A stretch of DNA of 64,000 nucleotides, from sequence record PP355766.1. One strand, 5' to 3'. Shown in pieces: positions 638 through 24,547 of this stretch. Under the pieces are notes generated by a model. That model did not search any database and had not been told where the DNA came from. It saw nothing but the letters and a program-made list of their open reading frames with translations. Position numbers and translations under genes: made by a program. How positions within the stretch are numbered: the stretch's first letter is position 1; the number at the start of each line of letters is the position of its first letter.

Positions 638-1011
638 TAACGACCCCCGTTCGGGAAACCGGAGGCAAGCAGGAAGCGAACAACGTCTTCCAGCGACGGG
701 CCTTCTCCATCTTCTTCCAGATGGAAAGGCAGAATAGCGTACTGCATGTCAGCTGGTGCTACCGGGGTGAAGGTAGGCTCTGCGGGAGCTTCTGCCATGA
801 ACACTGCGGTTCCGTCAACCAGACGATCGATCGCTTCACAGACTTCTAGCTGTTCTTCGATCTTGGCCTCGCGTTCGCGCATCAGAGCCAGCAGTTCAGT
901 GCGGTATTCTTCGATACGGCGGTCTAGAGACTCGATGTTATTGGACAGGTTATCCTGTACAATCATCAGGCGGACTACAGCAGAATTTCCATTAGTTGGT
1001 CGTGTAAACAT
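637..1011 (-). CDS. hypothetical coiled-coil protein (124 aa)
   Basis: GAGG RBS; heptad-like E/R/L-rich central region. Confidence 0.75.
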   Translation of the reverse strand: MFTRPTNGNSAVVRLMIVQDNLSNNIESLDRRIEEYRTELLALMREREAKIEEQLEVCEAIDRLVDGTAVFMAEAPAEPTFTPVAPADMQYAILPFHLEEDGEGPSLEDVVRFLLASGFPNGGR

Positions 1012-1031
1012 GATATTTCCTCGATTGATTA

Positions 1032-1304
1032 TTAGATAAAGTCGCCGGTAGAGACTACCAGTTTAATGCTTTTACGGAAGATTTCGTGCATACCGTCGTG
1101 AACCATTACTGTCCCGACCAGTTTTGGAAGGTAGACTTCCACATCAATATTACCATATGGCATGGCGTGCTCGTCAGTAAGTTTAGTCCATAACTCCGGC
1201 TGAAGCTCGCAGTTATAGAACACCATCCATTCATGATCACCATCCCATCCGTCCCAGTTAAGAACCAGTGCGGATTCAATACCTGTTGCAGTAACCTTTG
1301 ACAT
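1032..1304 (-). CDS. hypothetical protein (90 aa)
   Basis: GAGGAG RBS, immediately downstream of promoter 1336-1364. Confidence 0.8.
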   Translation of the reverse strand: MSKVTATGIESALVLNWDGWDGDHEWMVFYNCELQPELWTKLTDEHAMPYGNIDVEVYLPKLVGTVMVHDGMHEIFRKSIKLVVSTGDFI

Positions 1305-1335
1305 TTGCTAACTCCTCTCGTTAATTTATGAATCT

Positions 1336-1364
1336 ATTATAGCAATTATAAGAGCGTTTAGCAA
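1336..1364 (-). promoter_or_regulatory. T5-type early promoter
   Basis: TTGCTA-17-TATAAT followed by AGATTCATAAATT (PN25-like initial transcribed sequence). Confidence 0.85.
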
Positions 1365-1381
1365 ATGAATTTTTGAATTAT

Positions 1382-1535
1382 CCGCTCCGAAGAGCGGTAA
1401 TCCAGGCTTGCAGCTGTTAGTTACACTTGGTTTGAAGTTGTCTAGGACATTAACTAGAGGTTGATGGCCTCCCCGTTTCTGCAACTAACATTTCACAGCT
1501 TCTCGGACGTTTGACGGCCCTGACCGAAGTCTCAC
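1382..1535 (-). ncRNA. candidate structured ncRNA 3' of tRNA-Val
   Basis: 11-bp helix 1415-1425/1480-1490 (G.U wobble on minus strand), internal hairpins, 3' CCGCUC-UUCG-GAGCGG hairpin. Confidence 0.5.
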
Positions 1536-1542
1536 TGTAAAT

Positions 1543-1618
1543 TGGTACTTGCTGCTGGTTTCGAACCAGCTACCCTCGCCGTGTAAAGACGATGCTCTCC
1601 CGATTGAGCTAAGCAAGT
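1543..1618 (-). tRNA. tRNA-Val(UAC)
   Basis: Cloverleaf, loop UU-UAC-AC, CCA. Confidence 0.95.
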
Positions 1619-1621
1619 ATT

Positions 1622-1698
1622 TGGTGGTCAATAGTGGATTCGAACCACTGTAGTCTCACGTATGAAGCGAGTGCATAAACCATCTCTGCCAACTGACC
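1622..1698 (-). tRNA. tRNA with CAU anticodon (Met or lysidine-Ile2)
   Basis: Cloverleaf, loop UU-CAU-AC, A73, CCA. Confidence 0.9.
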
Positions 1699-1703
1699 TT
1701 ATT

Positions 1704-1779
1704 TGGTACTCCGAACTGGACTCGAACCAGTGACCTAACGATTATCGGTCGTTTGCTCTACCAACTGAGCTATCGAAGC
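1704..1779 (-). tRNA. tRNA-Ile(GAU)
   Basis: Cloverleaf, loop CC-GAU-AA (C33), CCA. Confidence 0.9.
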
Positions 1780-1780
1780 A

Positions 1781-1939
1781 TTATTGTTCCTGCTGGCGGA
1801 CGCAGATTTCCTCGTCCGGGTGTATTTTAGCGATCCTAGCGTCTTCCTCGGCTTCATTGTAGGTGTCGTGAAAAGCCGGTGCCAAGAATACAATCTCTTT
1901 TGTGTGGGTATTAATTAGCATACCTTGATAGCGAGTCAT
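1781..1939 (-). CDS. hypothetical protein (52 aa, MTRYQGMLINTHTKEIVF...)
   Basis: ORF fills the gap between the upstream ORF and tRNA-Ile; GAGG RBS. Confidence 0.65.
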   Translation of the reverse strand: MTRYQGMLINTHTKEIVFLAPAFHDTYNEAEEDARIAKIHPDEEICVRQQEQ

Positions 1940-1946
1940 AGTTACC

Positions 1947-2138
1947 TCAACGTTTACCATTACGAGGTGCTCCGGGACGTTTAGCAGCCCTCAACATGGA
2001 GGCTTTAACCTTAGCTATGTTTTCGGGGGTACGGTCGCTAGGTTTTAGCGCGGCTGCACTACACCAGTTTTCGCCTTCCCAAAGGGTATATACTACTATA
2101 TCTGTATTATCGAACTTCTTTTGTGTGAAGTTAAACAT
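1947..2138 (-). CDS. hypothetical protein (63 aa, MFNFTQKKFD...)
   Basis: AGGAG RBS before ATG 2138; the longer track ORF overlaps tRNAs. Confidence 0.7.
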   Translation of the reverse strand: MFNFTQKKFDNTDIVVYTLWEGENWCSAAALKPSDRTPENIAKVKASMLRAAKRPGAPRNGKR

Positions 2139-2153
2139 ACCAGCTCCTAGAAT

Positions 2154-2230
2154 TGGATGCTCCGGCAAGATTCGAACTTGCGATCTCCAGCTTATGAGAC
2201 TGGCGAGGACGGCCTCTCCTCTACGGTGCA
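2154..2230 (-). tRNA. tRNA-Met(CAU), possibly initiator-type
   Basis: Loop CU-CAU-AA, A11-U24 pair, A4.A69 mismatch, U73, CCA. Confidence 0.8.
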
Positions 2231-2232
2231 AT

Positions 2233-2308
2233 TGGCAGGGGCAACAAGAATCGAACTTGTGACCTAAGGCTTCAGAGACCTCCGCTCTACCTACTGAGCT
2301 ATACCCCA
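2233..2308 (-). tRNA. tRNA-Gln(CUG)
   Basis: Loop CU-CUG-AA, U1.U72, G73, CCA. Confidence 0.9.
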
Positions 2309-2318
2309 ATTATGCGCA

Positions 2319-2431
2319 CTCTGCTGAGTACAACGTTGTGTCTAGGGCCAGAACATAAATGCTTGCATTTATGGGAGGCGGCTAGAAGAGGGATGTGACC
2401 CAGAGGGCTAACCTCGTCACTCCCAGCAGAG
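2319..2431 (-). ncRNA. candidate structured ncRNA between tRNA-Arg and tRNA-Gln
   Basis: Closing helix CUCUGCUG/CAGCAGAG; inner GUGAC/GUCAC and CAUAAAUG-CAAG-CAUUUAUG hairpins. Confidence 0.55.
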
Positions 2432-2437
2432 ATTTTA

Positions 2438-2512
2438 TGGTACACCATCGAGGAATCGAACCTCAACCATAGAGTTCGTAGCTCTATATTCTATCCATTA
2501 AACTAATGGTGC
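2438..2512 (-). tRNA. tRNA-Arg(ACG)
   Basis: Cloverleaf, loop CU-ACG-AA, CCA. Confidence 0.95.
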
Positions 2513-2519
2513 AGTAATC

Positions 2520-2596
2520 TGGAGGGATATCTTGGATTCGAACCAAGATAGACTCGATCCACAATCGAGGTCATTATCCAGTTATGATAATATCCC
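2520..2596 (-). tRNA. tRNA-His(GUG)
   Basis: Loop UU-GUG-GA, acceptor GGGAUAU/AUAUCCC, U73, CCA. Confidence 0.9.
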
Positions 2597-2599
2597 AAA

Positions 2600-2742
2600 T
2601 TTGAGCACCATCGAGGGCTGATCAGACCTCCACAGATAGAGTGCACATCGCACACATTATCCGGTTAGACCGCGTATTGGTACGTTGCACTTCGTGCAGC
2701 ATATTAATCCAATATGCGACTCATCGAACGATGATGCTCAAA
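2600..2742 (-). ncRNA. candidate ~143-nt rod-like ncRNA
   Basis: 14-bp terminal helix UUUGAGCAUCAUCG/CGAUGGUGCUCAAA with one U.G wobble, nested inner helices. Confidence 0.6.
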
Positions 2743-2744
2743 TT

Positions 2745-2845
2745 TGGTGGCCCTAAGAAACTCTTCCCACTCACAACTAGTTGATTACTTCTGGATTTTC
2801 GCCCAGAAAATTCTCTAGAAAGGGGCAACCGTTACTCGTCGGGCC
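2745..2845 (-). ncRNA. CCA-ended tRNA-like RNA lacking a normal anticodon or T loop
   Basis: Acceptor-like GGCCCGA/UAGGGCC followed by A-CCA; inner UUCUGG/CCAGAA hairpin. Confidence 0.6.
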
Positions 2846-2851
2846 ATTATT

Positions 2852-2939
2852 TGGAGGAAGATAATGGAGTCGAACCATCACCGATTGCTCAGTGGGCTGG
2901 TTTTCAAGACCAGTTGCGTACCACTACGCCCTATCTTCC
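2852..2939 (-). tRNA. tRNA-Ser(UGA)
   Basis: Loop CU-UGA-AA, long variable arm, CCA. Confidence 0.95.
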
Positions 2940-2946
2940 AATTATT

Positions 2947-3033
2947 TGGTAGGGATGGAGGGGGTCGAACCCACACGGATATTTCACCACTAGAACCTAA
3001 ATCTAGCGCGGCTGCCAATTTCGCCACATCCCC
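2947..3033 (-). tRNA. tRNA-Leu(UAG)
   Basis: Loop UU-UAG-GU, long variable arm, CCA. Confidence 0.95.
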
Positions 3034-3038
3034 ATTTA

Positions 3039-3200
3039 TTAGTTTTCTTTGATCAGACTTTTAATCTTCTCAAAGTTTTGGTCAGAAATACAGATACCTT
3101 CCAGGGCAAAAGAGGCTCTAGAACTTTCTAATACCATGTCTACCACAGCATCAAAATTTTCCTCTCTAAAGAAGTTTTCGCTTTCATTTGCCTTTTCCAT
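3039..3200 (-). CDS. 53-aa VbhA-like (Fic-inhibitor motif) microprotein
   Basis: MEKANESENFFREENFDAVVDMVLESSRASFALEGICISDQNFEKIKSLIKEN; SFALEG fits (S/T)xxxE(G/N); AGGGG RBS. Confidence 0.65.
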   Translation of the reverse strand: MEKANESENFFREENFDAVVDMVLESSRASFALEGICISDQNFEKIKSLIKEN

Positions 3201-3219
3201 ACGTACCCCTAACTTTAAT

Positions 3220-3298
3220 TGGTGGAGTCACAGAGATTCGAACTCTGCTGCTATCCTCGGTGCAAGCGAGGTGTCCACTCCTAGCAGACCCTGACCCC
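3220..3298 (-). tRNA. tRNA-Ala(UGC)
   Basis: Loop CU-UGC-AC, G3.U70, CCA. Confidence 0.95.
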
Positions 3299-3316
3299 AA
3301 TAATTTGTTAAGGCAA

Positions 3317-3501
3317 TTAATCCGGTGCGCGTAATACCCTGAGCAATTAGCCATGCAAGGATACCCGCTCTTCACAAATACGATACACTCTACGCTTACC
3401 AGGCGTTTCGGAGAGCCACTCCGCTATTCTTGCAAACCCTCAGTTCAATTACCGAGCAAGCTGCAAGCGTGTTTTTTGGTTCCGGCTCTGTATCAGATTA
3501 A
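3317..3501 (-). ncRNA. candidate structured leader or ncRNA (~185 nt)
   Basis: No credible ORF; closing UUAAUCUG/CCGGAUUAA, nested GAUACA/UGUAUC, AGAGCC/GGCUCU and CUUGCA/UGCAAG helices. Confidence 0.45.
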
Positions 3502-3523
3502 TTCCTTAACAAACTATATAAAT

Positions 3524-3552
3524 ATTATATCAATTTGTTAAGCATTTAGCAA
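3524..3552 (-). promoter_or_regulatory. T5-type early promoter
   Basis: TTGCTA-17-TATAAT. Confidence 0.85.
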
Positions 3553-3571
3553 CTGAATTTTTCAGTAAATT

Positions 3572-3648
3572 TGGTACTCCCGACGGGGTTCGAACCCGTG
3601 TTCCCACTGTGAAAGAGTGGTGTCCTAACCAGCTTAGACGACAGGAGC
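3572..3648 (-). tRNA. tRNA-Glu(UUC)
   Basis: Loop CU-UUC-AC, CCA. Confidence 0.95.
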
Positions 3649-3658
3649 ATTTTAAATT

Positions 3659-3734
3659 TGGCAAGGGAAGGAGGAGTTGAACCTACCGATCTCGGAGTCA
3701 AAGGCCGATGCCGTAACCACTTGGCTATTCCCTT
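3659..3734 (-). tRNA. tRNA-Gln(UUG)
   Basis: Loop CU-UUG-AC, G73, CCA. Confidence 0.9.
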
Positions 3735-3745
3735 TCAATATAAAT

Positions 3746-3774
3746 ATTATCTCAAATTCTAAAGCATTTAGCAA
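3746..3774 (-). promoter_or_regulatory. T5-type early promoter
   Basis: TTGCTA-17-GATAAT directly upstream of tRNA-Gln. Confidence 0.75.
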
Positions 3775-3828
3775 TTGAATTTTTCAAGTATTTTGGTAGT
3801 GACCCGGCAACGCAGGTCACTATGCAAA

Positions 3829-4323
3829 CTACTCGCCGTGGTCTACACGAATGAGCGGACAAAGTTTGTCCTTCTTGTAGATTCGCATCTTTTGGTAGAT
3901 GTTACCGAAGCGAAGCTCTTCATCGCGAGCATTATACTCTTTCTGTGCCCTTTCAAAGGATTTACTCGCGTTCCATTCCTGGATCCGATCCCCTATCTTA
4001 GCGCAGGCCCAGCCGATCCCAGTTATCGCCAGCAGAATCGCTACTATCGTAGATAGTCCTGCTAGACTTAACCCTACAAGCATGTACCAGGGAGTAATTC
4101 CCAGCTCAAAGGTGAGGCCCAAGAACGTAGATAAGATACTTCCCATCCCCAAGGAGAAGAGTACAGCAATAGCAGTTACGCCAATCTGTAGCAGGAAATA
4201 CCACACTGAGTGCCAAAATAGGCTACACAAGGTGACTCTGTTGTCGTTCAGCCGATAGGTGAAAGACGCGGAAGAGAAATTAAGCCACTTGTAGAAAAAA
4301 CCTTTACGTTTAATATTCAGCAT
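3829..4323 (-). CDS. membrane protein (164 aa)
   Basis: Two long hydrophobic segments. Confidence 0.8.
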   Translation of the reverse strand: MLNIKRKGFFYKWLNFSSASFTYRLNDNRVTLCSLFWHSVWYFLLQIGVTAIAVLFSLGMGSILSTFLGLTFELGITPWYMLVGLSLAGLSTIVAILLAITGIGWACAKIGDRIQEWNASKSFERAQKEYNARDEELRFGNIYQKMRIYKKDKLCPLIRVDHGE

Positions 4324-4333
4324 ATTTAGCCTA

Positions 4334-4543
4334 TTACTTGAGTTGATTGATTAGGAAAACTTGTAGCGCGATAATGAATGCGGCATAGGAGTCAGAGCCT
4401 TTACCACCTTCGTTCTCATTAACTTCTTTTAGTAGGGCTTCAAAAGCTGCTTTGTGACGCTCATAGTGCCCTCTAACTGTCGGGCCAGCATCCTCTAACA
4501 TGCCTAAAAGCATATAGTACTGGGTTTGTAATTGGGCGTCCAT
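4334..4543 (-). CDS. hypothetical protein (69 aa, MDAQLQTQYY...)
   Basis: TAATG coupling with the upstream ORF. Confidence 0.75.
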   Translation of the reverse strand: MDAQLQTQYYMLLGMLEDAGPTVRGHYERHKAAFEALLKEVNENEGGKGSDSYAAFIIALQVFLINQLK

Positions 4544-4740
4544 TAGTCCTCCCACACGATTTTAATCGAGAGAAGACGATTTACAGGAATGACCAGCATA
4601 GTCTCAGACCGTTTATTAAGGATTTCCAGGATATCCCCATCACGATGGAGCAGACGTTTAGGACTGATATCTGTTACTGTGGACTCTAGGACGATACCAC
4701 TGTCATCCACGAAGGATACGATTGCGTTTTTAGTAGACAT
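4543..4740 (-). CDS. hypothetical protein (65 aa)
   Basis: AGGAG RBS after the tRNA. Confidence 0.75.
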   Translation of the reverse strand: MSTKNAIVSFVDDSGIVLESTVTDISPKRLLHRDGDILEILNKRSETMLVIPVNRLLSIKIVWED

Positions 4741-4761
4741 TTTAGTCTCCTGTTATGAAAT

Positions 4762-4839
4762 TGGTGGCTCCCGGAGGATTCGAACCTGCCTACCTTCCGC
4801 TTATGAGGCGGGTGCTCATACCCAATGAGCTTGAGAACC
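4762..4839 (-). tRNA. tRNA with CAU anticodon (elongator Met or Ile2)
   Basis: Loop CU-CAU-AA, A73, CCA. Confidence 0.9.
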
Positions 4840-4843
4840 TGAG

Positions 4844-4863
4844 AAGGGCTATTTCTAGCCCTT
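4844..4863 (-). terminator. hairpin (terminator or processing site)
   Basis: AAGGGCUA-GAAA-UAGCCCUU between the ORF and the tRNA. Confidence 0.45.
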
Positions 4864-4869
4864 AGTTAT

Positions 4870-5163
4870 TTATACTGCTGCTTCATCTTCCGGGGTGCCT
4901 TCCACCGGAGGTTCTTCAGTAGGGGTATCCTCTACCGGAGTGTCTTCAGTTGGAGCATCTTCAACCGGCTCAGGATCTTTCACGAAGCCTGCTTCTTCAT
5001 CGGAGATCACATACAGATCCTGAATATCCTCTGTATTGATCATACGAGCTACGCTACCATCTTTATAGAAGACGGATTTAGTGCCCTCGTTGCGAGCCAT
5101 GTTCGCATCGATAATCAGCTCAGTGAGAACCCCTTTCTTTAAATATTCAATTTTGTAAGCCAT
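4870..5163 (-). CDS. hypothetical protein with acidic Pro/Glu/Asp/Thr 5-aa repeats
   Basis: GAGG RBS; PVEDA-PTEDT-PVEDT-PTEEP-PVEGT tail. Confidence 0.8.
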   Translation of the reverse strand: MAYKIEYLKKGVLTELIIDANMARNEGTKSVFYKDGSVARMINTEDIQDLYVISDEEAGFVKDPEPVEDAPTEDTPVEDTPTEEPPVEGTPEDEAAV

Positions 5164-5197
5164 TTTATCCTCTACTTTCTCTTTGATTTAAAGAACT

Positions 5198-5226
5198 ATT
5201 ATACAAAATTTCTGACAAAATTGCAA
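5198..5226 (-). promoter_or_regulatory. T5-type early promoter
   Basis: TTGCAA-17-TATAAT. Confidence 0.85.
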
Positions 5227-5314
5227 GAAAAATTTTGTAGAATCAATCTCAGTCTGCGCCCTGCGGGCTTTTTACCGCTGCCCACTAAATATTACGTGTG
5301 GGCAGCGATTAAAG

Positions 5315-5390
5315 TGGTACTCCCTACAGGATTCGAACCTGTGACCCACGGTTTAGAAGACCGTTGCTCTATCCTCTGAGCTAAGGAAGC
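5315..5390 (-). tRNA. tRNA-Arg(UCU)
   Basis: Loop CU-UCU-AA, CCA. Confidence 0.95.
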
Positions 5391-5391
5391 A

Positions 5392-5556
5392 TTAATAAAG
5401 TTTAAGTGTTTTGACAACCAGATCATGAACCTGTTCAGAATACCGGCCAACGCTCTTATGCAGCGACTCCTTAAATTCTAGAGTACGTCTAGCGATTAGC
5501 TGCTTCTGTTCAGGTGTCAGATTCGGTGGTGGACGTTCATAAGGTGGTGTACGCAT
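5392..5556 (-). CDS. hypothetical protein (54 aa, MRTPPYERPPPNLTPEQKQ...)
   Basis: AGGAG RBS; ends 1 nt before tRNA-Arg. Confidence 0.7.
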   Translation of the reverse strand: MRTPPYERPPPNLTPEQKQLIARRTLEFKESLHKSVGRYSEQVHDLVVKTLKLY

Positions 5557-5569
5557 GTTGGTCTCCTAA

Positions 5570-6320
5570 GTATCTTTAAGAACTCTCGTGAAAGCTCTTA
5601 AAGATACCGCCAGTAGGTAGGGGCCTTCCCCTGTTTAAGCTATGCGGCCCTTCTGTCAGACGTATCTTCCAGTTATAGTCAAGGTGACTAATATACCTTG
5701 CCAGATCCCGGCCAACGGATATCCGTCGGCTAATGCGGTCTAGGCGAGGGCACACTCCAAACAGGGGCACTTCTAGCCTGTGTAAGGGTGCTATAAATAG
5801 TGGTTATGCTTTCGCTCGGGGTGACTCCGGTCATGACTCCATTGTCACATGCTTACACAGGGTATACGAGCTTCCGCGGAGCTGTATACTCAGCCGTGTC
5901 CCACTTAGGTCTCGGAGCGACCGTTTGTACGAACGGTTATCCGAATACTCTTTCCCACTTAGAGTCAGGCGAGATCCCACCTCGCCAAAGTTCATACGAT
6001 CATCATGCCGTATTTAAGGACTAGTTTTGGCACTTCTGGAGAGCCATCCTCCACGCGGTCTGTTAAAATCACACCTCCGAATTTTCGATGTGAAGTTCGG
6101 CTATCTCTAGCCATCCAGCGTATGGTCGCTTCGCACCTGCCACTCTTACGTTCAAATCGGTTTAGGCGGTGGCAGCCCTCCGAAGTTCCGAGTTTGGTTG
6201 AGGCCGTCAGGTTTCCTCGTGGTTTAGCTGTTTCGTTCCCGCGAGTCTCCTAAGTCTTTCCCTAGGAGGGGAGGAGGTACTCCAGCAGCGAGTGGTTCGC
6301 CAATAGAACCATCAGTTATC
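5570..6320 (-). ncRNA. candidate large multi-helix ncRNA (~700-750 nt)
   Basis: No credible ORF; more than ten helices including perfect 5777-5786/5852-5861 and 5628-5636/5759-5767; wobbles favour the minus strand. Confidence 0.65.
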
Positions 6321-6327
6321 TAGCTCT

Positions 6328-6413
6328 TTCCGACCGCAGGATTCGAACCTGCACTTTCCGCATCTGGGGATAGCTCCCCGCGTGCAGAAGTCTACCAATT
6401 AACTTAGGACGGC
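6328..6413 (-). ncRNA. tRNA-like element with anticodon arm replaced by an extended hairpin
   Basis: D arm AGUU-AAUUGGUA-GACU, T arm GCAGG-UUCGAAU-CCUGC, central UUCUGCA/UGCGGAA plus GGGGA-GCUA-UCCCC, no CCA. Confidence 0.7.
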
Positions 6414-6419
6414 AGTGTT

Positions 6420-6840
6420 GCTACATAAGTGATTTCGACACCCCACTATGGTGGCAATAACCAGCACCAGACGCTATACACATGTCTCCAATTTGCAGCC
6501 TAGGCAGGTCAGTGTGGGAGCTATACGAGTTTCTCAGGCTCAGCCCCCACCTCTCCGGCAGGCCACGCACCATGCTTCATTCTGGTCGAACAAGTTAAAG
6601 TGAGATTCCACCATTTTCTATAAATCAGGAGAAGAGTTTACGAGGCTACGGGACAGCTCCCGAGTTTTACAAGAGATCTCTAACCTACGCCCGTCCAATA
6701 CGCTCCCTGGCCGGTATCCGGACTGGATGCACGAACTTTGTTAGGTGATCACTCTTAACTCACCGATTCTATTCAACGAATCTTAATGCTCGACGAGTCT
6801 TACATTAAAACAAGTTCAGCGTAATCGGCCCGCTGTTCTC
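6420..6840 (-). ncRNA. candidate structured ncRNA (~400 nt) at the 5' end of the transcript
   Basis: Starts just after promoter 6857-6885; multibranch 5' domain and a long nested rod (6514-6522/6542-6550). Confidence 0.55.
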
Positions 6841-6856
6841 TCTAATTTATGAAACT

Positions 6857-6885
6857 ATTATATCAACTTTTTAAGCATTAGGCAA
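6857..6885 (-). promoter_or_regulatory. T5-type promoter driving the non-coding locus
   Basis: TTGCCT-17-TATAAT overlapping the hydrolase stop; not followed by an RBS/ORF. Confidence 0.8.
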
Positions 6886-7332
6886 CTGAGATTTTAATTT
6901 ATAGAACACATGGTTGCCAATTTTACTTGTTCTTTTGAAGTCCTTGTCTTTTGTCCAGTAAGGTTTAGTATCTTTACTGTGAAAGTACAAAGCTCCCTTC
7001 GTCGGATCTACTGGAAGATCCATATAGTAAACTAGTCTAGCTATCTCTTTAGCTTGTTTCCACTCTTCGTCTTTACGATCGAGTTTATGTTTCTTTTTAC
7101 CAACCCAGCTGAACTGCCCTGGTTGATAGACTACTTTACAATATGTGGACGGGAATTTTCCATAGTTAACACGATTTTTCGTTACTTGTGCAACTGCGGT
7201 CATTCCTTTAACTCCTTCCCCTCTAGCTTCAAAGTACGCATTTTTAGCTATGCACTCTATCTCATGCGCATCAATCTTTGCCTGCGCATGGAAACTAGTG
7301 AGGATGGAGATCATTAGAATGGCTGCTTTCAT
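6871..7332 (-). CDS. SleB/Hydrolase_2-type cell wall hydrolase with signal peptide
   Basis: YFEARGE, VAQVTKNRV, QFSW, GALYFH and IGNHVFY motifs. Confidence 0.9.
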   Translation of the reverse strand: MKAAILMISILTSFHAQAKIDAHEIECIAKNAYFEARGEGVKGMTAVAQVTKNRVNYGKFPSTYCKVVYQPGQFSWVGKKKHKLDRKDEEWKQAKEIARLVYYMDLPVDPTKGALYFHSKDTKPYWTKDKDFKRTSKIGNHVFYKLKSQLPNA

Positions 7333-7365
7333 TATTTCTCCTTTACTCTTTGATTCAAGAATAAT

Positions 7366-7395
7366 AGTATATCAAGAAATCAGCCATTTAGTCAA
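7366..7395 (-). promoter_or_regulatory. sigma70 promoter
   Basis: TTGACT-18-TATACT. Confidence 0.6.
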
Positions 7396-7396
7396 A

Positions 7397-8401
7397 TCAA
7401 ATTTTCAATTTCGATTCGATAGTTTTAATACAGTACGCTTCTACCAGGGCGTCAAACACCGGATCATGTTTCGACGGGTAGACTCCCTCAGGAATCAGGT
7501 TGTAACGCTCGATTACGTCATGTGCGTATACTTCAGCACAGCGTACCAATGCTTTCCAGTCTCCTCCGAGAGCCTCAAAATAGTCACGCGGGTTACGGGC
7601 GCTAGAAATATCCCAAAACTTCCACGGAACGATCGCAGGGTCAGATGGGGAGAAGATGTTAGCCTGAGCTGCCACTGTTTCGTAGATGGACATGTCGAAC
7701 TGCGGGCCATTACCATAGTGGCGCAGAGAACGAGTGTCAATGCCCTGCTCGTCGATAATACCTTCGATTACCTGTTTTGCCTCTACGAACGGGCAGATCA
7801 GATCCATGAACGTATGCTTGGATACAGGTGATTCATGGGTCGGATTGCAAACTAGAACGGTAGACTCACCGTCTTTAGCGTTCAGGGCTTCAATAATGGA
7901 CAGTGACGGGGCACTACCAGCACGGGCCTCATTCATCCAGAATGCAATAGTTCCGGCGGACACTTTAGCACCTAGGGCCAACTGCTGGGCCACATTAGGG
8001 GTGCCTAAAACGATATACGGGTCTAGCGACAGATCTTTCAGCAGTACAAAAGCGAAAGACGGCATAGCGATAAAGGTGCTCTTGCAGTCTCCCGGAGTTC
8101 CCAGAGATTCGATATCGCAAACAGAGATCCAGCGGTCTTGTAAGTTTTGCATATTGTTTCCTTTGTTATTAAAGTTGCTTCTAGATGTGCTACCACATTT
8201 AGAAGCCACCTCCGGTGGTGGCTTAGTCATATCTTCGGACACATCCCAGTTTTCTTCCATAGACGGCCAGTCAGCCGCCCAATCTTCGAGTTCTTCGTAG
8301 CACGAATCCATCAGTTCCCGGGAGTTGACCCTAGAGTAATCTAGGGCCGACTTATGTGTCGCTGCACGATTGAAATCGTTTTTAGCTACAAAATTTCGCA
8401 T
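7397..8401 (-). CDS. DEDDh 3'-5' exonuclease (domain starts at internal ATG 8152), in frame with an upstream ~83-aa ORF
   Basis: CDIES (ExoI), GNGPQFD (ExoII), HDPVFDA (ExoIII); AAGGA RBS before 8152. Confidence 0.8.
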   Translation of the reverse strand: MRNFVAKNDFNRAATHKSALDYSRVNSRELMDSCYEELEDWAADWPSMEENWDVSEDMTKPPPEVASKCGSTSRSNFNNKGNNMQNLQDRWISVCDIESLGTPGDCKSTFIAMPSFAFVLLKDLSLDPYIVLGTPNVAQQLALGAKVSAGTIAFWMNEARAGSAPSLSIIEALNAKDGESTVLVCNPTHESPVSKHTFMDLICPFVEAKQVIEGIIDEQGIDTRSLRHYGNGPQFDMSIYETVAAQANIFSPSDPAIVPWKFWDISSARNPRDYFEALGGDWKALVRCAEVYAHDVIERYNLIPEGVYPSKHDPVFDALVEAYCIKTIESKLKI

Positions 8402-8811
8402 TATGCCTTCTTAGCGGGTTTGCGTTTTTGATTACGAGGCTTGTTTGCCTTGCCCGTAAATTTAATACCTACGCCGTAGCACAGGGCGCGAACATTCTCA
8501 CGGCTGTACTCGCAGCCAAAGATATTCGGCTTGACGCTACCGAAACGGCCCTGGGTCTTGCGCAGGACTTCTTTGGTGTCCGCCTTATCCGGCGTACTCC
8601 AGCCAACGATCTTCGAGACGTAGCCAGAGGTAGAACCCTTAGTTACCGGCTTTTTACGACGCGGGGCCGGTTTGCTTACAGCTGATGCTGCTTGAGTATC
8701 AGCCGGATGTTTACGCAGATGACGCTCCAGACGTGCTTTGCGATTCTCTTCAGTTTTAGGAAAAGTTGCAACTTTGGTTTCTACTGCTTTTTTAGAGGTC
8801 TGCTTAGCCAT
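8401..8811 (-). CDS. highly basic hypothetical protein (136 aa)
   Basis: K/R-rich; AAAGGA RBS; downstream of promoter 8857-8885. Confidence 0.8.
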   Translation of the reverse strand: MAKQTSKKAVETKVATFPKTEENRKARLERHLRKHPADTQAASAVSKPAPRRKKPVTKGSTSGYVSKIVGWSTPDKADTKEVLRKTQGRFGSVKPNIFGCEYSRENVRALCYGVGIKFTGKANKPRNQKRKPAKKA

Positions 8812-8856
8812 GATTTATTTCCTTTGTTTTGATTGGTTTCGTTAATTTATGGATCT

Positions 8857-8885
8857 ATTATACGTTAATTTTTAGCGTTTAGCAA
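8857..8885 (-). promoter_or_regulatory. T5-type early promoter
   Basis: TTGCTA-17-TATAAT. Confidence 0.85.
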
Positions 8886-9215
8886 CTGCGTTTTTTCATT
8901 TTCATCTACAAGCTCATCGAAGATGATGTACTCGTACCTATTACCGCCCGATGTGCTTCGCTTGCTCTTCCGAGCTGATGTACTGGTACCCGCCTTTGTT
9001 GTACGCTGGTGCTGTACAGAGTTTCTTTCGCTCAATTTCTTTAAGAGCGGCTCGTTCTCTTTCAGCCATCTCAGGATCCAGGATTTCCCGTGCCTGCGGT
9101 CTTGGTGGTAGACGCGTAGAGGGTTCCCCGATTTTGACGCTTCCAGAAACGCGGCGTAGAGATCGAGCTGGTACTGTGGTACGTTTGGGAACAAATCCCT
9201 CAAATCTGGTGCCAT
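8865..9215 (-). CDS. hypothetical protein (116 aa) with RRHGKS and YIIFDE motifs
   Basis: TAATG-coupled to the ORF 9215-9376. Confidence 0.65.
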   Translation of the reverse strand: MAPDLRDLFPNVPQYQLDLYAAFLEASKSGNPLRVYHQDRRHGKSWILRWLKENEPLLKKLSERNSVQHQRTTKAGTSTSARKSKRSTSGGNRYEYIIFDELVDENEKTQLLNAKN

Positions 9216-9225
9216 TATAATTCAT
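8941..9225 (-). CDS. overlapping alternative-frame ORF (~94 aa) ending APAYNKGGYQYIS...
   Basis: GAGG RBS upstream of ATG 9225; C-terminal motif resembles small phage proteins (from recall). Confidence 0.45.
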   Translation of the reverse strand: MNYNGTRFEGFVPKRTTVPARSLRRVSGSVKIGEPSTRLPPRPQAREILDPEMAERERAALKEIERKKLCTAPAYNKGGYQYISSEEQAKHIGR

Positions 9226-9376
9226 CTCCACCCCTCAGAGCTTTCCACTCCGCTTCAAAGATTTGGGCTTCCATACGTGCGATTCGCAGTTTCATTACTA
9301 CTCGATCCACTCCAGGCTCCATCAGGAGCACTTCATATTTCATTTCGCTAACTAAGCGGCGTAAATTCTCTAACAT
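9215..9376 (-). CDS. hypothetical protein (53 aa, MLENLRRLVSEMK...)
   Basis: TGATG coupling with rnh and TAATG coupling downstream. Confidence 0.75.
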   Translation of the reverse strand: MLENLRRLVSEMKYEVLLMEPGVDRVVMKLRIARMEAQIFEAEWKALRGGDEL

Positions 9377-9858
9377 CACATATCCTCCATTTCTAGCTCG
9401 GTCATGCGAACATTTAGCAGGTTATCTGCGGCCTCATTACCTTCTACACCGGAGTGGCCCTTAACCTTAACGAAAGTTGGGATCTCATTATGGTTGAGAC
9501 GATACTTCTTGAGTTCGTCAATAATCCACTTCCACTGGTCTAAGTTCAGAGGTGTATCACCATCTGCCTTCTTCCAGCCTTTACGTTCCCAGCCCCAAAC
9601 CCAGGACTCACAACCATTCTTAACGTAGGTTGAGTCCAGATAGATTGTCATTGGTCGGCCAGGATTTTTGTTAGACCATAGCAGAGCCTCTAGGACTGCT
9701 TGAAGCTCCATCTCGTTGTTAGTTGTGTTGCGTTTGGGAGCAGACTTGGTTCCGATTTGCTCTTCGCTGGAGTTGTAAACTACCATAGCCCAAGCACCAA
9801 CATTGTCTACCCCACGGGTATTACCGCGGCAACCACCATCAGTATAAACATGAAACAT
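9376..9858 (-). CDS. rnh: ribonuclease HI
   Basis: YTDGGC, TNNEMEL, YLDS, VKGHSG..GNEAAD. Confidence 0.97.
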   Translation of the reverse strand: MFHVYTDGGCRGNTRGVDNVGAWAMVVYNSSEEQIGTKSAPKRNTTNNEMELQAVLEALLWSNKNPGRPMTIYLDSTYVKNGCESWVWGWERKGWKKADGDTPLNLDQWKWIIDELKKYRLNHNEIPTFVKVKGHSGVEGNEAADNLLNVRMTELEMEDM

Positions 9859-24244: not shown

Positions 24245-24515
24245 TGCCCGCTGGGAGACAAGGAAGTTTCCCAAACGTGATATGAAAGCACGGAAGGCCA
24301 AAGAAATAGAGTTGTGTAGAGTAATACCTATTCGCTTAGCACAGATGCCAAATATCTATGATTGGCTAGAAGCTCAGCGAAAGACACGCCTTTCTATACG
24401 CATCAACATGGAACTAAACATGGGGTACAAGAGTCTATCTGAATTCATGCATGTTACTTTCGACCCTACGTTCTATGAAAATCGCGATTGCTTAGAAGCT
24501 AAATCTGTATTATAA
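24231..24515 (+). CDS. hypothetical basic protein (94 aa)
   Basis: GGAG RBS before ATG 24231; overlaps the obp stop. Confidence 0.7.
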   Translation: MSKRDARWETRKFPKRDMKARKAKEIELCRVIPIRLAQMPNIYDWLEAQRKTRLSIRINMELNMGYKSLSEFMHVTFDPTFYENRDCLEAKSVL

Positions 24516-24516
24516 T
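24488..24516 (+). promoter_or_regulatory. promoter for D2
   Basis: TTGCTT-17-TATAAT. Confidence 0.8.
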
Positions 24517-24547
24517 AGTTTCATAAATTCGAGAGAGGATAAAGAAC

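Follow-up and report, generated by a model that had tools for sequence, protein, structure and literature searches.

Bacteriophage T5 carries, directly behind the annotated 'promoter P 16-17' and directly abutting a gene for an arginine transfer RNA (tRNA-Arg), a 719-nt misc_RNA named rnaX (NC_005859, 40848-41566), which the record annotation describes as a 'stable RNA with unknown functions'. The rnaX label also stands at the matching site of phage DT571/2 and of Salmonella phage 5/BF23; in the literature, we found neither a secondary structure nor a function for RNAX. Here, we consider positions 6,420 to 6,840 on the minus strand of a 64,000-nt stretch of sequence record PP355766.1. This whole stretch, which we call the window and to which all coordinates refer (minus strand unless stated otherwise), is from a T5-like Klebsiella phage (Sugarlandvirus). 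Based on a comparison with about 35 distinct relatives from six genera, we regard it as highly probable that 6420-6840 is the non-coding 5' third of an RNAX-family transcript of about 1.3 kb, which has a modular fold and belongs to a single transcription unit. RNAX is already known as an annotation; new is the architecture of its 5' part, of which we found no description.

From a structural perspective, RNAX resembles several other systems in part. Like GOLLD and ROOL, it is a very large, many-domain, non-coding RNA that is borne by phages near tRNA genes and is built from a variable and a conserved half. However, the covariance models of GOLLD and ROOL match neither the window at E up to 10 nor five relatives at E up to 1, and the hosts differ, RNAX being found in enterobacterial T5-like lytic phages; we found no published link between T5-like phages and either class. 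With MALAT1/mascRNA and bacterial tRNA operon spacers, RNAX shares a tRNA-shaped element that lies at a domain boundary within a long structured transcript and that could be used by RNase P and RNase Z. In RNAX, however, this cleavage is a prediction, and its tRNA-like element has neither anticodon loop nor CCA end, while its acceptor stem contains mismatches (two non-standard pairs). Finally, expansion segments and variable peripheral domains of ribosomal RNA, RNase P RNA and group I introns likewise consist of independent helices that are inserted at tolerant points of a scaffold and differ between close relatives, whereas the insertions of RNAX are swapped as cassettes between phages, probably by recombination.

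Homology and expression of the RNAX unit

The locus is homologous to the annotated T5 rnaX. The two share map position, strand, the type of promoter ahead and tRNA-Arg(tct) behind, and they have in common both strands of a closing helix (P1), a linker, the tRNA-like element and a 3' terminal block. Nucleotide searches (blastn) align T5 with the window at 6896-6838 (80% identity), 6449-6304 (73%) and 5690-5567 (68%). The T5 RNA differs in that the region from its start to the linker holds a 13-bp P1 hairpin alone; a multibranch core of about 215 nt and a 167-nt rod have no T5 counterpart, and neither blastn nor side-by-side reading revealed one for the interior 6835-6450. The 3' domain (5567..6327), which belongs to the same transcription unit and lies upstream of a small open reading frame (ORF) and tRNA-Arg(tct), is about 80% identical to Epseptimavirus and about 68% identical to T5 and Tequintavirus over its last ~120 nt, and its final ~38 nt are 95% identical in a Pectobacterium phage.

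The unit also occupies the place that is characteristic of RNAX, between a T5-type promoter downstream of an endolysin or YqeY-like gene and tRNA-Arg(tct), with a 54-aa ORF (window) or further ORFs (Sugarland) lying between the 3' block of the RNA and tRNA-Arg. The 1.3-kb region is matched by blastn in 526 phage records. Across the family, promoter, 5' modules, linker, tRNA-like element, 3' domain and tRNA-Arg are syntenic, and the order of promoter, RNA, optional HNH genes or small ORFs, tRNA-Arg and lipoprotein gene is kept in the 20 loci that we fetched. The first-pass annotation had left it open whether the stretch represents a separate non-coding RNA or the 5' domain of one RNA of about 1.2 kb. 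The latter fits best, given the synteny, the single misc_RNA of T5, a 1168-nt RNA contig (see below) and a promoter/terminator scan that found no promoter-like or terminator-like site between 6850 and tRNA-Arg; separate release of the 5' part is the less favoured of the two and is taken up below.

The promoter (6857..6885) is a sigma-70 promoter of the T5 early type, with the -35 box TTGCCT at 6885-6880, a 17-nt spacer and the TG-extended -10 box TGaTATAAT at 6865-6857. It matches the consensus at 10/12 positions plus TG and aligns with the annotated T5 promoters 'P 16-17' and 'P-D/E 33'. Typical promoter spacing would place the transcription start at about A6850, and RNA-library contigs end at 6841 and 6834, just inside this position. 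The segment 6860-6837, which reaches from the -10 box to the equivalent of +14, recurs three times in the window, at 10167-10144 (-), 1339-1322 (-) and 24513-24536 (+), with the motif TATAATAG[A/T]TTCATAAATT.GAGAG. Each of these three copies runs into GAGAGGA and then the ATG of a protein gene; the copy at the RNA gene instead runs into ...GAGAGAAC and the structured RNA, and the first-pass claim that neither a ribosome-binding site nor an ORF follows this promoter is confirmed. A standard mRNA leader has apparently been co-opted by the RNA gene, where it supplies one strand, the 5' one, of the closing helix. In a self-similarity search of the window, promoter and leader alone were repeated, and none of the modules was.

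Expression was assessed with assembled contigs from RNA libraries of three studies, placed on 3800-9500. Contig depth in run X18 is 918-5524 over 5519-6855 and on to 7046 compared with 22-69 in most flanks, and in run X15 it is 26-43 over the RNA compared with 0-8 in the flanks, such that the RNA region is deeper than flanking genes by 13- to 250-fold in one run and several-fold in another. In run X17, the 1168-nt contig (5672-6834) spans both halves of the RNA. Within 6283-6473, the same run, a metatranscriptome, holds four contigs of T5-like relatives without rod, in which the 3' strand of P1 runs straight into the linker and tRNA-like element; together, they reach a depth of 13,684, about 450 times that of the Sugarlandvirus-like contig. 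Because contamination by DNA would give flat coverage, these data point to an RNA that accumulates far above the neighbouring mRNAs. A stable RNA, as the T5 record has it, may lie behind this deep coverage, which is seen in assemblies from related phages.

A pseudoknotted core with exchangeable cassettes

How is the 5' part of RNAX folded? Its ends are joined by P1, which pairs the first 15 nt of the RNA (AUAAAUUAG-A-GAGAA, 6836..6850, beginning at the predicted start A6850) with 6633-6620 in 14 bp with one bulge. The 3' strand, UUCUC-CUGAUUUAU, directly follows the sequence AACUC of a further candidate helix (PJ; the 3' strands of PJ and P1 together span 6620..6638), as supported by pairing in the alignment and by the minimum free energy (MFE) fold, which also includes P1. 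On alignment A3, the P1 model is 98.5-98.8% paired, and five pairs are doubly changed. In T5, a 6-nt loop replaces the ~215 nt between the strands, which creates the 13-bp hairpin at the very 5' end (z = -3.76). Since T5 keeps the P1 strands as a direct hairpin, it provides a natural experiment demonstrating that P1 is a real helix. P1 closes a multibranch domain of about 215 nt.

The conserved core of this domain consists of a 5-bp hairpin, P2, whose loop pairs with a strand located about 50 nt downstream. P2 (CAGCG-GGCCGAUUA-CGCUG, 6817..6835) is nearly invariant; in Pectobacterium and Proteus phages its stem becomes CAGCA/UGCUG by a compensating change. The pseudoknot, PK (6763..6828), is formed by the loop sequence CCGAUU (6828-6823) and AAUCGG (6768-6763), and is backed by covariation and by the MFE fold. 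It comes in four versions, CCGAUU/AAUCGG, CCGAUU/AGUCGG, CAGACU/AAUCUG (Pectobacterium, Proteus) and CAUACU/AAUAUG (Providencia), with compensating changes at two positions. Its 3' strand is part of a junction block, GAAUAGAAUCGGUGAGUU (6757..6774), which is invariant or nearly so in 28/28 aligned sequences and also contains GAGUU (6761-6757), the 5' strand of PJ. PJ would pair this strand with AACUC (6638-6634); it is 100% paired with 13 changes from A-U to G.U. Because PJ is missing from Providencia phages, we propose it tentatively from sequence comparison. A pairing like AGAGU/ACUCU may form in those phages; as an alternative partner for AAACUC, the pairing of AGAGU of the junction block with ACUCU was dropped for the enterobacterial phages, where a variable base (G/A/U) goes uncompensated.

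Taken together, P1, P2, P3 (see below), PJ and PK have 99.1% of cells paired in the 28-sequence alignment, with 9/33 pairs doubly changed; none of 500 shuffles did as well, and slid controls gave 0-4. The MFE fold of the window includes P1, PK, P3 and the P3a hairpin within the latter. These counts are anchor based, because the RNAalifold consensus from a MAFFT alignment of the multibranch domain misaligned non-homologous cassettes and proved unreliable.

The core was found in Sugarlandvirus, Epseptimavirus, part of Tequintavirus, the Pectobacterium phages DU_PP_V (Hongcheonvirus) and My1, the Proteus phages PM135 and Stubb, and the Providencia Priunavirus phages. Pattern scans of IMG/VR and metagenomes returned true matches from T5-like phages exclusively. 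A degenerate P2 pattern gave mostly chance matches in metagenomes and eight true homologues near known types, which added single mismatches and no new covariation. Among cellular genomes (one per prokaryote species), the scan yielded 11 matches, none with PK complementarity or a downstream AAACUC block; they look like chance, and several resemble the 3' end of a conserved protein-coding gene. A tblastn search with the endolysin for distant Demerecviridae was too unspecific. Rfam returned tRNA matches alone, both for the whole window at the gathering threshold and for the locus at E up to 10, as well as for five relatives (T5, Eps7, DU_PP_V, EASG3, saus132) at E up to 1.

Non-homologous cassettes sit at fixed positions around this core in the relatives and occur in mosaic combinations. 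The P3 cassette (6775..6816) comprises AAC/GUU closing pairs and the hairpin P3a, UUUUAAUG (6810-6803) with CAUUAAGA (6788-6781). Nine different closing helices were found at this one position, among them AAC/GUU (window) and AGACUC/GAGUCU (Providencia phage PSTCR5), and each cassette folds as a self-contained stem-loop with its own first and last bases pairing. The nine P3 closings and four PK versions span phages of Klebsiella, Escherichia/Salmonella, Yersinia, Pectobacterium, Proteus and Providencia. The P4 cassette (6671..6756) is closed by AAGAG (6756-6752) and CUCUU (6675-6671), and has several interior registers that each fit a different subset of sequences. Its closing strands, namely the five bases after GAGUU and the five that end two bases before a conserved AAAAY block, delimit several unrelated cassette types and vary as AAGAG/CUCUU, AAGAA/UUCUU, (U)GGAA/UUCC, AGAUU/GGUCU, (G)GAGA/UCU(G)C and (U)GAGG/CCUC; the Tequintavirus cassette has no P4 closing helix. 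The P5 hairpin (CGGGA-GCUG-UCCCG, 6649..6662) keeps its loop on different stems, with GCUG retained on CUCAGU/ACUGAG in DU_PP_V; other phages have an alternative hairpin with GAGG/CCUC or GUGG/CCAC.

In DU_PP_V (locus L020, 1052-1163) and My1 (locus L165), an additional hairpin of the P1 type (CAUAAAUUAAAG...CUUUAAUUUAUG), with about 90 nt between its strands, forms the beginning of the RNA. The conserved core lies within a second closing helix (GUAAAGAA/UUCUUUAC) that comes next.

The first-pass annotation had described a 5' multibranch domain as well, closed by GAACUU/AAGUUC and bearing three arms, UUAAUG/CAUUAA, GAUUC/GAAUC and GGUGA/UCACC. All complementary segments that it named are present where it placed them, the idea of a multibranch domain holds, and the UUAAUG hairpin, which is our P3a, is kept in every phage with this cassette through U.G>C-G and A-U>G.U changes. 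The closing helix and the other two arms found no support, and in its detail the proposed 5' fold is mostly incorrect. GAACUU/AAGUUC is complete in Sugarlandvirus only, with a mismatch in Shiner; its 5' strand is partnerless in S124 and NBSal005-type phages, and four weak pairs are left in Epseptimavirus. GAUUC/GAAUC never covaries and holds with one cassette type only; GGUGA/UCACC never varies, is likewise confined to one cassette type and overlaps PK, PJ and P4. Strands of both hairpins lie in a block that is invariant even where the partner is absent, and both clash with the covarying PK, P3 and P4. Of the checks that had been proposed, covariation favours the UUAAUG hairpin and the rod over the GAACUU, GAUUC and GGUGA helices, and Rfam recognizes nothing beyond tRNA.

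The rod, the linker and the tRNA-like element

Downstream of P1 lies the rod (6448..6614), an optional module of 167 nt in which an apical loop, UGAGAAAC, and an internal loop, UGAA / GUAUA, are both conserved. Its 56-pair structure was taken from the fold of the window and evaluated on 11 distinct rod sequences: 85% of cells are paired, 21/56 pairs are doubly changed, 0/500 shuffles were as good and slid controls gave 4-9. RNAalifold independently recovered 30 pairs of the rod, 14 of them with double changes. All four helices of the nested rod proposed in the first pass, ACCAGA/UCUGGU > CAUG/CAUG > GCCU/AGGC > GUGGGGGCU/AGCUCCCAC (the last at 6550-6542 with 6522-6514), are contained in this covarying structure, which extends outward to AUGGUGG/CCACCAU (6614-6608 with 6454-6448). 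The rod is present in Sugarlandvirus, phiR2-01, Eps7, S116, bastian and S124, short in DU_PP_V, missing from My1 and cleanly absent from TrudiRoth, saus132, 26175IV, JNwz02 and all Tequintavirus loci examined. Given that T5 retains the P1 hairpin only and that several relatives do without the rod, the 5' modules are accessory expansions.

Between the modules and the tRNA-like element lies a conserved 34-nt linker, UAGUGGGGUGUCGAAAUCAC...ACACU (6414..6447). Every lineage has kept it, even T5 and those phages whose 5' domain has given way to an HNH gene, and linker and tRNA-like element are present in all loci. A pairing of linker GUGGGG with CCCC(U)AC of the 3' domain was dropped; the partner sits in a variable hairpin. 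The tRNA-like element (6328..6413) adjoins the studied interval and scores 35.1 bits with the Rfam tRNA model, with a 19-nt insert replacing the anticodon loop. ARAGORN does not call it and finds no tRNA in 6414-6860; the studied interval itself is thus no tRNA, the tRNA-like match lying just outside. The insert (6395-6355) is a hairpin with differing yet paired stems, GGGGA-GCUA-UCCCC here and GGAGAU/AUCUCC in a metagenome relative (L119). In Proteus and Providencia phages (L168 ~840-880, 1090-1135; L167), a tRNA-like T-arm lies shortly behind the 5' core, some 450 nt ahead of the linker motif.

Some phages have HNH endonuclease genes in the RNAX locus or next to it. In the Salmonella phages vB_SenS-3 (L015 416-898) and KFSSM (L016 416-898), such a gene between promoter and linker replaces the 5' domain, and HNH endonucleases may drive the mosaicism of the cassettes. 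An HNH homing-endonuclease gene is also found at the Sugarland RNAX locus (L001 3568-4077).

In the window, the endolysin gene (7332-6871) abuts the RNA promoter and is followed by an ORF-poor region of 1.3 kb (6870-5560), the small 54-aa ORF (5556-5392), which lies between the 3' block of the RNA and tRNA-Arg, and tRNA-Arg(tct) itself (5390-5315), behind which a long tRNA cluster begins. In Sugarland and most relatives, the small ORF is set apart from the RNA's 3' end by about 350 additional bases with a 108-aa ORF (gp142), which are absent from the window (5557-5567 compared with L001 2941-3300). Upstream of their RNAX promoter, T5, Epseptimavirus and Providencia phages have a gene for a YqeY/GatB-like protein ('tRNA amidotransferase'; L002 1989-2423; L003 342-776; L168 1-268), which is the immediate neighbour in T5 and Epseptimavirus and lies one gene away in Providencia phages. 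The window has no such gene at the corresponding position, where the endolysin is found. By blastn, the 1.6 kb around 6420-6840 match Klebsiella phage vB_Kpn_AM_K4 at 100% identity and Sugarlandvirus genomes (Demerecviridae, T5-like phages) at 94-98%. The PP355766 record as a whole comprises 288,685 bp, about 2.6 times a normal Sugarlandvirus genome, and may be a joined or mixed assembly.

Processing, alternatives and possible roles

How might such an RNA be made and used? We envision that host RNA polymerase starts at the strong T5-early-type promoter, near A6850, and that P1 then pairs the beginning of the nascent RNA with 6633-6620 and closes the multibranch domain. The P2 loop would pair with the conserved downstream strand to form the core, from which P3, P4 and P5 would emerge as self-contained stem-loops, each module folding on its own. 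The rod (6614-6448), the linker, the tRNA-like element, the 3' domain and tRNA-Arg would follow in one transcription unit. By hiding the 5' end in a helix, P1 might make the RNA less accessible to 5'-end-dependent decay. RNase P and RNase Z are likely to cut at the tRNA-like element and at tRNA-Arg, which would define the ends of the RNA and may free a 5' part of about 435 nt. Conceivably, the conserved pseudoknot core and the rod loops serve as contact sites. Our best guess is that the RNA acts as a structural or binding platform that works with its tRNA mimic during takeover of the host.

A number of observations weigh against this reading, or at least temper it. For the interior of P4 and for the linker hairpin, several registers each suit another subset of sequences. 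In the Pectobacterium, Proteus and Providencia lineages, one position of PK is a C x A mismatch, single mismatches of PK occur in bastian and L023, and PJ is without any double change as well as missing from Providencia phages. Many pairs of the core are invariant and hence uninformative either way, and the structures tested were partly taken from the window's own fold, which favours them over slid controls. Folding energies are modest relative to shuffles (z = -1.68 for the whole stretch, -1.84 for the rod and -2.26 for the multibranch domain). The annotated start of T5 rnaX is the base equivalent to 6843 rather than 6850. The RNA contigs stem from related phages (88-99% alike) and are not reads of this phage; they show neither ends nor strand nor whether the RNA is one molecule, and expression is gauged only roughly by summed depths. 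Lastly, the stabilising role of P1, the processing by RNase P and RNase Z, and the function are matters that we infer.

The alternative that survives best differs from the single-transcript reading in the final molecule only. The 5' part might be made as a precursor and then work as a stable RNA of its own, of about 435 nt, following an RNase P cut at 6413/6414, comparable to the generation of the MALAT1 3' end at mascRNA. We consider this a real possibility, if a doubtful one. The tRNA-shaped element lies exactly at the boundary, and the 5' modules come and go among relatives irrespective of the 3' domain. Sequencing depth is divided on the matter: the 3' contig of run X18 (3110) exceeds its 5' contig (928) about 3-fold, whereas the two halves are similar in depth in run X15. 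Contigs are unbroken across 6413/6414 in all three runs, which speaks against a cut, though contigs cannot exclude processing, and so do the two non-standard pairs in the acceptor stem.

Rather than serving a purpose in the long transcript, the modules might be tolerated filler, that is, structured but functionless remnants of repeated recombination in the tRNA region, driven by homing endonucleases. Such an origin would readily account for the HNH genes in and beside the locus, which even replace the 5' domain in vB_SenS-3 and KFSSM, for the mosaic combinations of cassettes, and for the lack of the rod or the whole interior in T5 and many relatives. However, the pairing within modules has been maintained through compensating changes, and the junction strands as well as the apical and internal loops of the rod are conserved in sequence across genera. 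Because of this compensation and conservation, we conclude that selection acts on the folded RNA and deem the filler explanation improbable.

It is even harder to reconcile the data with a cis-acting leader, such as a riboswitch, an attenuator or a processing signal, whose pseudoknotted core would respond to a ligand or protein and thereby set how much of the downstream RNA and tRNA-Arg is made. The position immediately behind the promoter suits a leader, and the compact hairpin-plus-pseudoknot core with its invariant junction strands resembles the architecture of aptamers. Yet the 5' region is not followed by a terminator-like element or expression platform, and Rfam at E up to 10 reports no riboswitch or small ribozyme, including those that likewise feature a hairpin-loop pseudoknot, such as pistol. 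Moreover, T5 lacks the whole core and has kept the downstream RNA, and the 5' region itself reaches high contig depth. We therefore rate a leader function as quite improbable.

Least probable of all is that small proteins are made from the stretch, as implied by the 'hypothetical proteins' that some GenBank records place in the region (e.g., Sugarland gp139 and hypothetical proteins of SEL21): its only sense ORF (50 aa, 6573-6421) is shifted in its N-terminal frame by a 1-nt indel relative to the closest relatives Sugarland, SEL21 and Shiner, the rods of Eps7, S116, bastian and S124 contain no sense ORF of at least 30 aa, substitutions in the rod alignment track base-pair partners and not codons, and many careful annotations leave the region empty, such that these 'hypothetical proteins' are unlikely to be real genes and the absence of a conserved ORF expected in the first pass stands.

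T5 is a classic model phage, and among its most abundant-looking transcripts is a structured RNA of 0.7-1.3 kb with a built-in tRNA mimic and without known function. For the 5' third of this RNA, there is now a comparative model comprising a helix-locked 5' end, a conserved pseudoknot core and plug-in cassettes. Natural deletion variants, namely T5 without the core and TrudiRoth, saus132 and others without the rod, make a direct comparison possible in laboratory E. coli with phages of the BASEL collection. A bolder notion, which we hold to be rather unlikely, is that RNAX represents giant ornate phage RNAs of a new class, on a par with GOLLD and ROOL, in which the pseudoknot core and the rod loops dock for self-assembly, onto a phage or host protein or onto the RNA's own tRNA mimic, and in which the cassettes diversify under host defences that target tRNA or other RNA. 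If this were true, then a giant ornate RNA class would be carried by a genetically tractable family of model phages.

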